A stretch of DNA of 38,282 nt from Octopus bimaculoides (GCF_001194135.2 NC_068996.1:51685397-51723678), one strand, 5' to 3'. Shown: positions 7,117 through 24,796, numbered from the stretch's first letter. Program-made: numbers and translations. The notes: a model not told the origin generated them from the sequence alone.

Positions 7117-7329
7117 GAATCAACACAGTTACCAGTGAAGTCTGTATCATCTGCCACACAGATTGAAGAGACTCTTCTTTCAAGGTCTATTTCTTCAGTT
7201 AATACAAATGTTTATCCTACAAAATTGAAAATTGGTTTCCTTGGTTTGGGGATCATGGGGCAAGGAATGGTGATGAATTTAATACGCTCTGGCCATGAGG
7301 TTACTGTCTGGAATCGAACCTCAACTAAG
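7117..7329 (+). CDS. GLYR1: GLYR1 exon 2 in window: start of NAD(P)-binding Rossmann fold
   Basis: tttcAG / GTattt; ESTQLPVK...[39 protein letters not shown] with GxGxxG and NRT motifs of the beta-hydroxyacid dehydrogenase family. Confidence 0.95.
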
Positions 7330-7360
7330 GTATTTTTGTTGTCTCTATTTGTTTATTTAC

Positions 7361-7424
7361 TTATTATTATTATTTATTATTATTATTATTATTATTATTA
7401 TTATTATTATTATTATTATTATTA
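7361..7424. repeat. (TTA)n microsatellite about 30 nt downstream of the exon 2 donor
   Basis: Read directly. Confidence 0.97.
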
Positions 7425-7627
7425 AGATGGTGAGCTGGCAAAACACTTAGTGACATTTTGTCCATCCTAATGTTTTGAGTTCAAATTCCACCAAAGTCAA
7501 CTTCGCTTTTCATCCTTTTGGGGTCAATAAATTAAGTACCAGTGAAACACTGAGGCCGATATGATCAACTAGTCCCCTCCTCCAAATTTCAGGCTTGTGT
7601 CTATAATAGAAAGGATTATTATTATTA
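7425..7627 (+). mobile_element. tRNA-derived SINE family B (Meta-domain-like) with (ATT)n tail
   Basis: ggtgagctggca head, B-box-like gagttcaaattc, gctttcatccttttggggtcaataaattaagtaccag core. Confidence 0.8.
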
Positions 7628-7769
7628 TATCAAAACTCATAGCTTATATTGCTGGGTATGATGGAAAGGGTCAGCTGTCCACAGCCAGAAGACTAAGGGG
7701 ACACTTGTTTACTGGTCATGCTTCAAGAACCCTGCTAAGAATTCTTGCAGTTCCAAGCAATGCTGATTT
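7625..7769 (-). mobile_element. 5'-truncated R4/Dong-clade LINE end with (TAA)n tail
   Basis: 7769-7716 minus strand reads KSALLGTARILSRVLEA-stop (recalled R4/Dong C-terminal QKxxLLGTARILRxVL motif), then a short UTR ending in TAA repeats. Confidence 0.7.
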
Positions 7770-7781
7770 AATATTAATAAT

Positions 7782-7983
7782 AAGGCAGTGAGCTAGCAGG
7801 ATTGTTACCATGCCAGGCAATGCTTAGTGACATTTCTTCTGGCTTTTTATTTTCTGAGTTCAGCTTTGCCTTTCATCCTTTCAGAGTTGATAAATAAGCA
7901 CCAGTTGGGGTTGATGTAATCGATTAGCTTCCTCCCCCCAAATTTTAGTCCTTGTGCCTATAGTAGAAAGAATTATTAGTATT
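7782..7983 (+). mobile_element. SINE family B copy
   Basis: aaggcagtgagctagcag head, tttgcctttcatcctttcagagttgataaataagcaccag core, ATT tail. Confidence 0.75.
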
Positions 7984-8162
7984 AAGATGGTAAACTGACA
8001 GAATCATTACCATGTTGGAGAAAATGCCTCATGTTTTATGTTCTGTATTCAAATTCCACTGAAGCCAACTCTGCTTTTCATCCTTTCAGAGTTGATTCAA
8101 TTAGTACCAGTTAAATATGTAATCAATTTACCCCCTCCAAAATCAGAAACAGTTATTATTTA
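7984..8162 (+). mobile_element. SINE family B copy, head-to-tail with previous
   Basis: aagatggtaaactgacagaatc head, ttttcatcctttcagagttgat core, TTA tail. Confidence 0.7.
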
Positions 8163-20922: not shown

Positions 20923-21047
20923 CCATAATGAATAACAAACATGATCCACATTTTCCTTTACAACACCAGCAGAAAGATCTACGATTGGCATTAGATTTGG
21001 GTGATAGAGTTGAACAGCCTCTTTATGTTGCTGCTGCAGCAAATGAG
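20923..21047 (+). CDS. GLYR1: GLYR1 exon 7 in window (phase 1-0)
   Basis: atttcAG / GTaact; AIMNNKHDPHFPLQHQQKDLRLALDLGDRVEQPLYVAAAANE with the family F-x-L-x4-KD motif. Confidence 0.95.
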
Positions 21048-22696
21048 GTAACTTTTTTTCTTTAAATTACTAAATAAAACTGTATTGCTTAGCACACTTC
21101 ATTCAAATTATCAACTGCTTATTTTCAAATTAATGTAGCATTCAGTTAGAGACATCCCTTATTCATTCTTGAAAATGTTACTGTAAAGCAAGAACCTATT
21201 TTCCCATTGATTTCCCAGGGGTTTGGTTTGATTGTGTGAATACTGTCAGCTAGAGAGCCTTCTACTGTGGGTGTGGGTTGGCCACTATCATTTAAGTTAA
21301 ATTGATAGATGGCAACTGAAAGAAGCCTGCTTGTGTGTGTGTTGATTTTGTATTGCCCCAAGACTTGATGTGTGTATGCAGTGATTGTAAGCAAAAAGCC
21401 TCACTGTTCATAGTGTCATTTGTTGAAATGACTGGGGATTATCTTGCTTGAAAACGTGAGGGTTGGTGGGGGGGGGGGGGCAGCCAAATGTAGAAAACGT
21501 GCCTCAGTGAATTTAATCTGGCCCAAGCAAGGATTGAAAAATGAATGTTAAATTGATTGAATAACTGGTGGCATGTTTCAATGGAACTCCTTTTTTTCTA
21601 AAAAAAAAGTAGAGATACAATCATTATTATGCATGAAAATACCAATTTTTGAACTCTGGGAATGATACCCAAGTAAGGGTTTCAATTTCATATCTCCAGC
21701 AGGATTCTCTCCTACAAATGAAAAGGCTGAGTTTCAACAAAATTGTACACTTGCTCTGGTGTATAACTTCCTTTGGCTATAATGTTATGCTAAATCCGAC
21801 ACTTCTTAACTTTGAAACAAGACCTTTACTAGCAAGTAAAGGTTTCACACCAGAAGTTGCATGTTCACTTTATGCAAATTATAATAAAAACTTTTAACCT
21901 AAACTTGACCATTGTGTTTATAAGCACATTGAGTTCAGTTTGGTCATTGATCCACAGGCTCAGGAGCCATCCCGTTTTAAGTGCATCTTCGGAGTTATGA
22001 AGAATATTGCCTGAGCATTGAATGGAATAACTGTTTGAGCCCTTGACCTAATTTTATACTCATTGTTACATGTTATTCATTTTGTAGCCATTACAATGTT
22101 TAAGGCTTCTATAATGTGGCTGTACTCTTGCAAAACATCTGGTTTAACATTCAACATAATTTGTTTTTTGCAACTCCTTTTTGCACTTCTGCTTTCATTT
22201 ACACTTTGTGGACAGTCTCTAGTTATACTGAATATTGGTAGAGTACTGTATCTTGGAGGAATGAAGTGGAAGGAAGAACTGTTTGGTTTCATTAAAATTA
22301 GCAAGTCGGAGGTCAGTTGGTGTGCACATGTTGAGGAAGGAACGATGCTAATGTGTTGAGATCAATAAAGAAACAAGGCCAGTTCCATTGAAACATGCCA
22401 CTATGTATTGTGCTCAGGACTGCCTCTCTCTCATTGCCCTCAGTCCTGCAGACTACTCTACCATATAATACTTCTCATCACTAACCCCAATCGTTGACAG
22501 CTATCATCTTAACTACTGCTTCTTGTCCATCTTCCACTCTCTTCTACATCCCCCCTATTCTCCTCATGGGCTCCCTGCTCATCCACCTTTCAGCCCTACC
22601 CATTCTGGTAGTCTACCTCTTCGTTCTTCTCATACAATCTTGTAAACTGATTCTTCAACTCATTTGTGCCTTATGGGGCCACCTAAATACCTTATT

Positions 22697-23272
22697 GGGA
22701 TCTTTTTTAAAACGGGGGCCACATTTTTCATTAACGAAACACTTTGAAACTTGGAACACTGGTAGAATGTGTCATATAAAACATCTTTTTCTCTTAGTCT
22801 TCTTAAAAAAAAAAGAAATCCATAAATTATTCCATGTTAAAGTTGTCGTATTTCTGTAATTTCAACCAATCACTGACGTCCATTCAGCCGATATACATTA
22901 AGTGCCGACTACATAAACAAACGATTCTGAAACAATTAACCCTAACCCTAACTCTAACCCTAATCCTAGGGTTAGGGTTAAAGCAAATTTAAAATGAAAA
23001 AAGCAAATAAAACGAAGGTATGGAGATTAAATACACTTTACATCGCTTAATCAGCCAAAGGAGTAAATGTAAACAACTGAATACTTGTCAGTGATTGGTT
23101 GAAATTATCGAAATAAGACAATTTTTTACATGAAATAAATTCGAATACAAAAATATTTTTCTGTTCTATAACACAAAATAGATAAGTATACGAAGTTTGA
23201 AAGTCTTTCGGTACCAAAAACACTACGTAAAACATTAATGAAAAATGTGGCCCTCGTTTTAAAAAAGATCCC
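22697..23272. mobile_element. 576-bp foldback MITE: 38-bp TIRs, 6-bp TSD CTTATT, central head-to-head telomeric repeats
   Basis: TIR 22697-22734 vs 23235-23272 match 37/38; CTTATT at 22691-22696 and 23273-23278; inner IR taatttcaaccaatcactgac / gtcagtgattggttgaaatta; degenerate (TAACCC)n then (TTAGGG)n at 22936-22981. Confidence 0.9.
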
Positions 23273-23454
23273 CTTATTGCTTTAATCTATCACTTGCAGC
23301 CCCTACTGTTCATTTTCTCTTTCTCTCCCCTTCCCCTACAAGGTGTGAGTAGCTATGCAGATCCTCTAGAATATCCTGTACTGCCCCCTGCCCCTTTATA
23401 GTGCAAATCCCATGTTCTCAGCATGAAATTGCCGTCCCTTCCCAGTTTGTAGTT

Positions 23455-23668
23455 TTGTAAGCTACCTGGAAATCTAAGTGGTACAGATGGCATGTAAAAA
23501 GCACCCAGTTCATACTGTAAAGTGGTTGGTGTTAGGAAGAACTTACAGCTGTAGAAACCATTCCAAAGCAGACATTGGAAGTATGATGGAGTCATTGAAC
23601 ACATCAGATCCTGTTAAACTGTCCAACCCATCCCAGTATGGAACACTGATGTTAATGGAGGAGGAGTT
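23455..23668 (+). mobile_element. Family A repeat fragment, sense to GLYR1
   Basis: gtggttggtgttaggaagaacttacagctgtagaaacc ... ctgtccaacccatcccagtatgga. Confidence 0.7.
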
Positions 23669-24721
23669 GAATTAGTGCAAGCACAAAGAAAAACTGGAGT
23701 CAGTGGATGGGTTGCATATGTTTTTAAAAAAGGTTTAGATTTTATCTGAGTTACAAGCTGTATTCTGAAATTAGGGGCCTTAGTAATCTTACTTTTACAA
23801 AGTGGGGAATTCCATAATGAGATTTTGTAACACAAGAAATGCCAATATTATCTCACAATTATTAGAATTTTAATTTTATCACAAATTTATATTTATAGAC
23901 ATTGTTCTGTAACAGTGCATGGAATAGATTTTGATATTGCATATCCTTTGTTAAAACAAAAATCACACAGTGTTATAGAGCAATGAAACATCATACTAAT
24001 GTTATTGTAAATGATGTTAAATTGTGTCTGTAGGTTTTAGCAGATCATATTGACCTTCAGTACTTATAATTATTTATATTTTCCTTTTCCTAATAAAACC
24101 CTTACAAACATATTTCTTTAAATTTACATCAGGGGTCTCCAAAGTTGTTGATATCGACCCCTTGGCGTCAATAAATGTACATGTATGGAGGTTTAGAATT
24201 TATTGAAGTTCCTGATTGTCTTCTTTCTTTTACTTGATCTAATAGCTGCTGTGTCATATTAAATTATTTGGAAGTTTCTATTGCACTTTATGAAGTCAAT
24301 TTAATATTTTAAGTTTCATTTGTAGAGAAAGTGACTTGTTTGTGTTTGGTCAGTTGAAACTAGTATTCAATCTTGAAAGTATTTTAACAGAATATAAAAA
24401 AACAAAAAAACTATTGTAGGTGCTACTTTAGCGTTCTTTCTACCACACTATCATAGAAATGAAAGGAAAGTAAAATGGATTGAAAACCAGAATGGAACTA
24501 ACAAAACAAAGTGGCATTTTTAAATAGTATACACATAAAATATAAACAAAAAAACAGCTGAAACTAAGATTGTGCTTAAAGTAGAACTGAAAGACAACTG
24601 TATGTGTGTGCATTGTAAAAGTTTTACGATTAAATTTGAAACAATTATTTTTTTGAAATCTCTTTAAAAATATATGTACATGTAATGTCACTGTAATAAT
24701 TATTTTTTTTTTCTTTTTCAG

Positions 24722-24796
24722 CTCTATAAAAAGGCTCGGCGTTTGGGTTATGGTGAAAGTGACATTTCTGCTGTATATCGTGCCACTAGTGCCTAA
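24722..24796 (+). CDS. GLYR1: GLYR1 terminal coding exon
   Basis: long T tract + cAG; LYKKARRLGYGESDISAVYRATSA then TAA at 24794-24796. Confidence 0.95.
   Translation, partial: LYKKARRLGYGESDISAVYRATSA

Follow-up and report, generated by a model that had tools for sequence, protein, structure and literature searches.

A mollusc orthologue of the chromatin factor GLYR1/NPAC in Octopus bimaculoides with the ancestral lysine/asparagine pair in its dehydrogenase-like domain

GLYR1 (also NPAC or NDF) is a chromatin factor of bilaterian animals in which an N-terminal PWWP reader is joined to a dehydrogenase-type domain, and in the human protein the linker between the two carries an AT-hook and an LSD2-binding peptide. 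Here we describe a gene of this family in a 38,282-nt stretch of the Octopus bimaculoides genome (NC_068996.1:51685397-51723678), the whole of which is called the window below; positions count from its first letter and its features lie on the + strand. The gene is almost certainly the mollusc orthologue of GLYR1/NPAC/NDF, represented in the window by its linker and its dehydrogenase-like half; in the latter, the Lys/Asn pair is ancestral and the cofactor motif is of the NADPH type. A 2012 study placed the PWWP-GLYR fusion in metazoans and noted that a cnidarian lacks it (PMC3457860). Two further papers report that human GLYR1 is enzymatically inactive and that its dehydrogenase domain is a tetramerising scaffold (PMC6004073, PMC13144531), and in the second of these the human substitution M437K is reported to break the tetramer. 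In the stand-alone Arabidopsis enzyme AtGLYR1, Lys170 and Asn174 are assigned to catalysis and Phe231, Asp239, Ser121 and Thr95 to substrate binding (Hoover et al. 2013, as summarised in PMC5399074).

Seven exons, all with an AG acceptor and six of them with a GT donor (the last is the stop exon), span positions 7117-24796 and together give an open frame of 969 nt, whose 322-amino-acid product has a C-terminal beta-hydroxyacid-dehydrogenase domain (Table 1). Pfam assigned PF03446 (E = 2e-42) and the all-helical C-terminal domain PF14833 (E = 3.5e-25) to the encoded protein, and the dinucleotide-binding motif GxGxxG of the Rossmann fold takes the form GFLGLGIMG in exon 7117-7329. In a phmmer search against PDB sequences the best match was human N-PAC (2UYY, E = 1e-99), followed by Geobacter 3PDU and 3PEF and Arabidopsis GLYR1 (3DOJ) at E ~1e-87 to 1e-88, with gap-free alignments over 282-289 residues, whereas human HIBADH (2GF2/2I9P) reached only 1e-28 to 1e-30. 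The NCBIfam enzyme equivalogs, including TSR and HIBADH, all scored under their cutoffs; the HIBADH model TIGR01692, for instance, gave 158 bits against a cutoff of 291.6. This score, together with the gap between the HIBADH and N-PAC E-values, ruled out HIBADH as the identity of the gene. An AlphaFold2 model built from a 30-sequence alignment (mean predicted local distance difference test score 82.5; residues 247-257 of low confidence) ranked 2UYY first in fold comparison (template modelling score, TM, 0.84), then 3PEF/3PDU and 3DOJ, with TM 0.82-0.85 overall.

The best 120 database matches were nearly all proteins with both PWWP (PF00855) and dehydrogenase domains, named cytokine-like nuclear factor N-PAC, putative oxidoreductase GLYR1 or nucleosome-destabilizing factor. 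The list was headed by named molluscs at 68-72% identity. No GLYR1 under a cephalopod name was among the 120, although the window gene represents a third molluscan branch; the collection searched may lack cephalopod models. All full-length mollusc orthologues among the best matches bear PF00855, while the closest PWWP-less relatives, from a hornwort, a marine protist and Desulfuromonas, have at most 50% identity. A protein (P0001) from a spliced transcript contig of a relative (L001, Logan SRR29271486) was 91% identical to the window protein. Trees were built by neighbour joining (NJ) only, with large alignments made by the fast modes of MAFFT and taxon names kept as in the source databases. 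With 100 bootstraps, the window gene and P0001 grouped at 100% and formed the sister of gastropods plus bivalves within Mollusca (100%), and Lophotrochozoa received 86%; deeper nodes were weak. Taken together, the Pfam assignments, the best match to 2UYY, the sub-cutoff equivalog scores, the PWWP-bearing matches, the tree and a linker motif shared with other molluscs (TQIEE.LL, right before the Rossmann fold) indicate GLYR1/NPAC/NDF orthology and not a separate enzyme paralogue. An earlier note on this DNA had likewise taken the gene to be a GLYR1/NPAC orthologue, and the alignment with 2UYY, HIBADH and 3DOJ and the NJ tree agree with it.

The upstream PWWP exon that the same note anticipated did not appear in the window. 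A tblastn search of the window with nine PWWP-bearing orthologues found no PWWP-coding fragment in any frame, and a hidden Markov model built from 15 orthologue N-termini gave noise only (best E = 2.2) against all 2035 open fragments in six frames. The PWWP-coding part is therefore outside the window or absent. The lack of a PWWP exon in the 7.1 kb of the window upstream of the domain would be expected if the gene were instead a stand-alone, PWWP-less enzyme paralogue (a glyoxylate/succinic semialdehyde reductase or HIBADH-like protein) and not a chromatin factor, and the only transcript contig of a relative, L001, spans the domain alone and begins with Met. Even so, such a paralogue is very unlikely. 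Exon 7117-7329 has an acceptor and no in-frame ATG ahead of the Rossmann motif, and an in-frame stop lies upstream of the acceptor (7063-7065), so the translation start must sit in an upstream exon and coding continues in that direction. The reading frame of L001 is open to the 5′ end of the contig, which is thus truncated. Moreover, the window gene is nested with 100% support in a clade of PWWP-bearing molluscs with which it shares the linker motif, the HIBADH and TSR models score far under their cutoffs, and no PWWP-less animal paralogue occurs among the close matches. We infer that the window gene has the PWWP architecture of its orthologues.

We then compared the domain with the active site of AtGLYR1, with residue numbers counted along the 3DOJ sequence. 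The positions equivalent to T95, S121, K170, N174, F231 and D239 are occupied by T, C, K, N, F and D in the window gene, which also carries NRT, and by T, S, M, N, F and D in human 2UYY. The catalytic KxxxN spacing is present as MKLVVN, aligned to K170/N174 of 3DOJ, and the motifs TRMKLVVNMMLGSMM, FPLQHQQKD, MST, NRT and PVCG are all legible directly in the window DNA. The substrate-binding Ser of the (D/E)xPVSG motif is replaced, giving EAPVCGS. Five of the six AtGLYR1 residues are thus kept: both catalytic ones, Lys and Asn, and all of the substrate-binding ones except S121, which is Cys. The active site that the earlier note had called intact is so at the Lys/Asn pair and at three substrate-binding positions, and falls short of that description at Ser121. 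The note's positions for the Lys, Asn and Cys codons read as given from the window, its plant numbering (five residues kept and S121 replaced) was borne out by the count along 3DOJ, and the comparators it had cited, human AKMMLIVN and Arabidopsis FPLKHQQKD, were found in 2UYY and 3DOJ.

The presence of these five residues together with NRT would fit a domain that is still an NADPH-dependent reductase of glyoxylate, succinic semialdehyde or another small carbonyl acid, its specificity shifted by the change of Ser121 to Cys and its PWWP domain tethering it to H3K36me3 chromatin, that is, a true enzyme on chromatin in molluscs and other Lys-keeping invertebrates. We regard this as possible but doubtful. 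In its favor, the T, K, N, F and D of the window gene are invariant across all mollusc orthologues sampled, and the predicted AlphaFold2 structure superposes on NADP+-bound Geobacter gamma-hydroxybutyrate dehydrogenases as well as on AtGLYR1. Comparison of the domain with the P0001 transcript gave a proportion of nonsynonymous differences (pN) of 0.039 and of synonymous differences (pS) of 0.80, the latter saturated, and hence a pN/pS of 0.048, uncorrected for distance; the Lys codon differs only synonymously (AAA vs AAG). This ratio indicates that the dehydrogenase domain is under strong purifying selection, which likewise fits a working enzyme, and in conjunction with the invariance of the residues among molluscs it indicates that the retention of the Lys is not due to chance.

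An investigation into the distribution of the Lys, covering the 120 best matches and, in a second round, 150 sequences that each represent a 50%-identity cluster (names from cluster look-ups, PWWP status from Pfam), revealed that it is kept in PWWP-bearing proteins of every bivalve and gastropod sampled, of Lineus (nemertean), Helobdella (leech) and Branchiostoma, of the tunicates Ciona, Phallusia, Styela, Clavelina and Oikopleura, and of Holothuria (echinoderm) and Ptychodera (hemichordate). It is replaced by Met in human and frog, by Arg in Lingula and by Gln in Capitella, and among arthropods by Asn in insects, a copepod, a spider, a scorpion and a horseshoe crab and by Ser in ticks. The earlier note had stated that the fly orthologue lacks the Lys, which is consistent with the Asn found there in all sampled insect orthologues. 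Because plants and bacteria have the Lys, it is ancestral and several lineages have lost it; the window gene has inherited it, and it is neither a reversion nor a peculiarity of this gene. The note's picture of a snapshot before conversion to a pseudo-enzyme therefore holds in that the Lys is ancestral, although nothing about it is special to this gene. As for its caveat that the Lys might be common and already described across invertebrate GLYR1, common it is, while a prior account of its distribution was not found in the searchable literature. A Lys in a GLYR1 is thus true but ordinary among invertebrates, and the window gene is typical of its phylum in a well-known family.

Residue 121 is lineage-specific. 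The window gene, P0001 and all gastropods have Cys there, bivalves and Lineus have Val, amphioxus has Ile, Ptychodera Leu, Lingula Phe and insects Gln; as judged from these sequences, its fixation within classes suggests that the substitutions came early and have not changed since, and not drift. All six residues, including Ser121, are kept by Phallusia, Clavelina, Ciona, Oikopleura and Holothuria (P0034, P0043, P0060, P0131 and P0123/P0266), and by their residues these tunicate and sea-cucumber PWWP-GLYR1 proteins would be the animal orthologues most likely to have stayed active, ahead of the window gene.

The remaining pocket residues were tabulated for PWWP-bearing proteins with and without the Lys; these counts are not phylogenetically independent, and arthropods dominate the Lys-lost set. 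Where the Lys is kept (n = 38), T95 is present in 100%, N174 in 87%, F231 in 79%, D239 in 97% and S121 in 13%, and where it is lost (n = 124) the corresponding values are 10%, 18%, 1%, 93% and 15%. Pocket residues besides the Lys have decayed in the arthropod, Lingula and Capitella losses. That T95, N174 and F231 come and go with the Lys suggests that the pocket may be used as a unit where the Lys survives. Decay of the pocket with the Lys in these groups and its persistence elsewhere would favor a retained reductase, and we consider it a tentative possibility, drawn from residue patterns, that PWWP-GLYR1 of molluscs, tunicates, echinoderms, amphioxus and nemerteans is a working NADPH-dependent carbonyl reductase on H3K36me3 chromatin, with catalysis lost independently in vertebrates, arthropods, a brachiopod and some annelids.

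Several observations stand against enzymatic activity. Conservation of the pocket is no proof of turnover, since vertebrate GLYR1, which is reported to be inactive, keeps T95, S121, N174, F231 and D239 and so has the same pocket residues apart from the Lys; we therefore rejected pocket conservation as proof of activity, and it would also fit a role outside catalysis, for example in structure or in the binding of NADP(H). Ser121 is replaced (by Cys, Val, Ile, Leu or Phe) in most Lys-keeping PWWP proteins, and the non-hydrogen-bonding Val, Ile or Leu in several Lys-keeping lineages speaks for a scaffold. Furthermore, the known functions of the human and fly orthologues need no catalysis (PMC6004073, PMC13144531). 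On our analysis, the domain probably works like the studied human and fly orthologues: it would bind NADP(H) and serve chiefly as a scaffold for oligomerisation in a factor that reads chromatin through PWWP and acts in elongation, and its catalysis would be weak or dispensable. The Lys would have been kept because it was never lost, with residual reductase chemistry possible but not needed for function. Ser121, the fourth substrate-binding residue, has turned into Cys.

Some of the evidence does not sit easily with this role as a scaffold. The tracking of the Lys by T95, N174 and F231 among PWWP proteins is the pattern expected of a still-used active site, subject to the non-independence of the percentages on which it is based. 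In addition, Ser121 is classed as substrate-binding and not as catalytic (Hoover et al., as summarised in PMC5399074), so that Cys need not abolish the chemistry, and position 121 is Ala, Leu, Val or Ile in some short PWWP-less homologues (presumably from bacteria) that keep Lys and Asn. The PWWP exon itself was not seen in the window, so that the full architecture of this gene is taken from its orthologues.

The earlier note had also speculated that adenosine-to-inosine recoding of the AAA Lys codon (to Arg or Glu) could shut the activity off; recoding to Gly would be a further outcome. The idea draws on the codon being all A and on a cephalopod origin, and the synonymous AAG in the relative's transcript is indistinguishable from ordinary divergence. 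However, the consensus of the relative's spliced transcript contig still encodes Lys. The RNA fold of exon 5 and its flanks had z = 0.16, with 54 of 100 shuffles folding as well, and the codon lies in no long inverted repeat; both results are uninformative more than negative. We find recoding scarcely credible.

By itself the window gene is of little consequence, as an ordinary orthologue whose residues are those usual in its phylum. The distribution across animals is apparently undescribed: the Lys of PWWP-GLYR1 is ancestral, kept in at least six invertebrate groups and lost in vertebrates, arthropods, Lingula and Capitella, and it bears on the question of whether the dehydrogenase half of this chromatin factor was ever, or anywhere still is, an enzyme. 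If the Lys-keeping proteins were indeed reductases, the inert scaffold of human and fly would be a repeatedly derived state, and the mollusc change of Ser to Cys or Val would reflect a shifted substrate, with the Cys possibly a redox-sensitive site by the nicotinamide. A link between redox state and chromatin is a hypothesis.

Table 1. Coding exons mapped in the window and a candidate linker exon upstream of them.
Feature	Position	Strand	Content
Candidate linker exon	2333..2566	+	78 codons, phase 0/0; DESSPLKSS...KLTENNVY, Lys/Ser/Pro-rich; AG acceptor, GTAAGT donor; phase fits exon 7117
Exon 1 of mapped part	7117..7329	+	Linker end and Rossmann start GFLGLGIMG; NADPH-type NRT (7312-7320)
Exon 2	8345..8455	+	CRDFIKEGAL...AAVKD
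Exon 3	16823..16924	+	MST; T95-equivalent codon ACT 16889-16891
Exon 4	18304..18466	+	EAPVCGS; S121-equivalent is Cys, TGT 18346-18348
Exon 5	20330..20509	+	GETGMATRMKLVVN; Lys AAA 20356-20358 (K170-equivalent), Asn AAT 20368-20370 (N174-equivalent)
Exon 6	20923..21047	+	FPLQHQQKD; Phe TTT 20952-20954 (F231-equivalent), Asp GAT 20976-20978 (D239-equivalent)
Last coding exon	24722..24796	+	LYKKARRLGYGESDISAVYRATSA; stop TAA 24794-24796

Upstream of the mapped exons, a candidate linker exon (Table 1) probably belongs to the GLYR1 gene. A genomic contig of a close relative (L002, Logan SRR11869394) aligns to window positions 2018-2872, and the frame of the candidate exon is kept in it through a 3-nt indel. 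Identity is 94% in the exon, 91-92% in the adjacent flanks and 79-85% further out; since the relative is so close (92% identity in introns), this contig is unable to show exon-specific conservation. The relative behind P0001 and L001 is far more distant, with saturated synonymous sites. A search with the exon for a full-length relative gave as its sole match P0426, an open reading frame (ORF) called on an unspliced genomic contig of a close relative, which is uninformative on PWWP. The exon itself had no Pfam match, did not detectably resemble the linkers of orthologues and showed no AT-hook motif; the LSD2-binding region is also missing from the fly protein (Fei et al., PMC6004073). The 5′ end of the L001 transcript, sought in the window with up to 3 mismatches, had no match. 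An assembly gap of 81 N (5673-5753) lies in the intron between the candidate exon and exon 7117 and may hide a small exon.

The window DNA is AT-rich and eukaryotic in character (G+C fraction 0.27-0.43), with long introns, microsatellites and dispersed repeats, and an Rfam scan of the whole window gave zero matches. Long microsatellites are intronic or intergenic: (TTA)17 at 7374-7424, 45 nt past the donor of exon 1, (TC)39 at 4458-4535, (TC)35 at 16024-16093 and (TA)35 at 13126-13195. A dispersed repeat of ~180 bp, SINE-type (short interspersed element) in appearance, occurs at 16113-16293, 27484-27636 and 29629-29810, with shorter copies at 23520-23579 and 31108-31170, and a copy has up to six others elsewhere in the window; some copies lie within the GLYR1 introns. 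Downstream of the gene there is a retroelement remnant at 35371-36060 (+) and also at 33205-33834 (+), with a 230-aa ORF carrying a YIDD motif. Relatives of this ORF bear PF00078 (reverse transcriptase) and PF26215, and the ORF and those adjoining it had no significant Pfam match themselves.

Among the described proteins, human GLYR1/NPAC/NP60 (2UYY) is ~55% identical to the window protein, gap-free over 289 residues, and shares with it NRT, MST, N174, F231, D239 and the C-terminal AAAANE..K.A....D.SAVYRA; the same overall architecture is expected by orthology. The two differ in that the human protein has Met437 in place of the Lys, FYLKYIQKD in place of FPLQHQQKD and Ser (PVSGN) in place of Cys. 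The arthropod NDF proteins (Drosophila CG4747 family) belong to the same PWWP and dehydrogenase family, with 55-59% identity in the domain; unlike the window gene, however, they have lost the Lys, T95 (MTG/MTS) and F231 (Leu/Met/Gln), and the insects have also lost N174 (Gln). By contrast, the GLYR1/N-PAC predictions from other molluscs, such as Sinanodonta, Saccostrea, Patella and Aplysia, are 68-72% identical to the window protein, agree with it in K, N, T, F and D and read HFPLQHQQKD. The gastropods among them share PVCGS with the window gene, whereas the bivalves have Val at 121, and these orthologues are full length with PWWP, while the N-terminus of the window gene lies outside the window.

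The stand-alone enzymes are more distant. Arabidopsis GLYR1 (3DOJ) reads AKMKLIVNMIMGSMM, PVSGS and FPLKHQQKD and aligns gap-free with the window protein over ~284 residues; together with Geobacter 3PDU/3PEF it shows 47-50% identity and TM 0.82-0.85. These three proteins share with the window gene the Lys/Asn pair, T95, F231, D239 and the NADPH-type N-R-T/N motif, but they differ in lacking PWWP and linker, in having Ser at 121 and in their demonstrated activity. Tunicate and echinoderm GLYR1 (Ciona, Phallusia, Clavelina, Oikopleura and Holothuria) combine PWWP with the Lys, as is expected for the window gene, but have kept Ser121. The pseudo-enzyme state of human GLYR1, in which the catalytic Lys has been lost, is not shared by the window gene; losing the Lys is characteristic of vertebrates and arthropods and not of the family as a whole.

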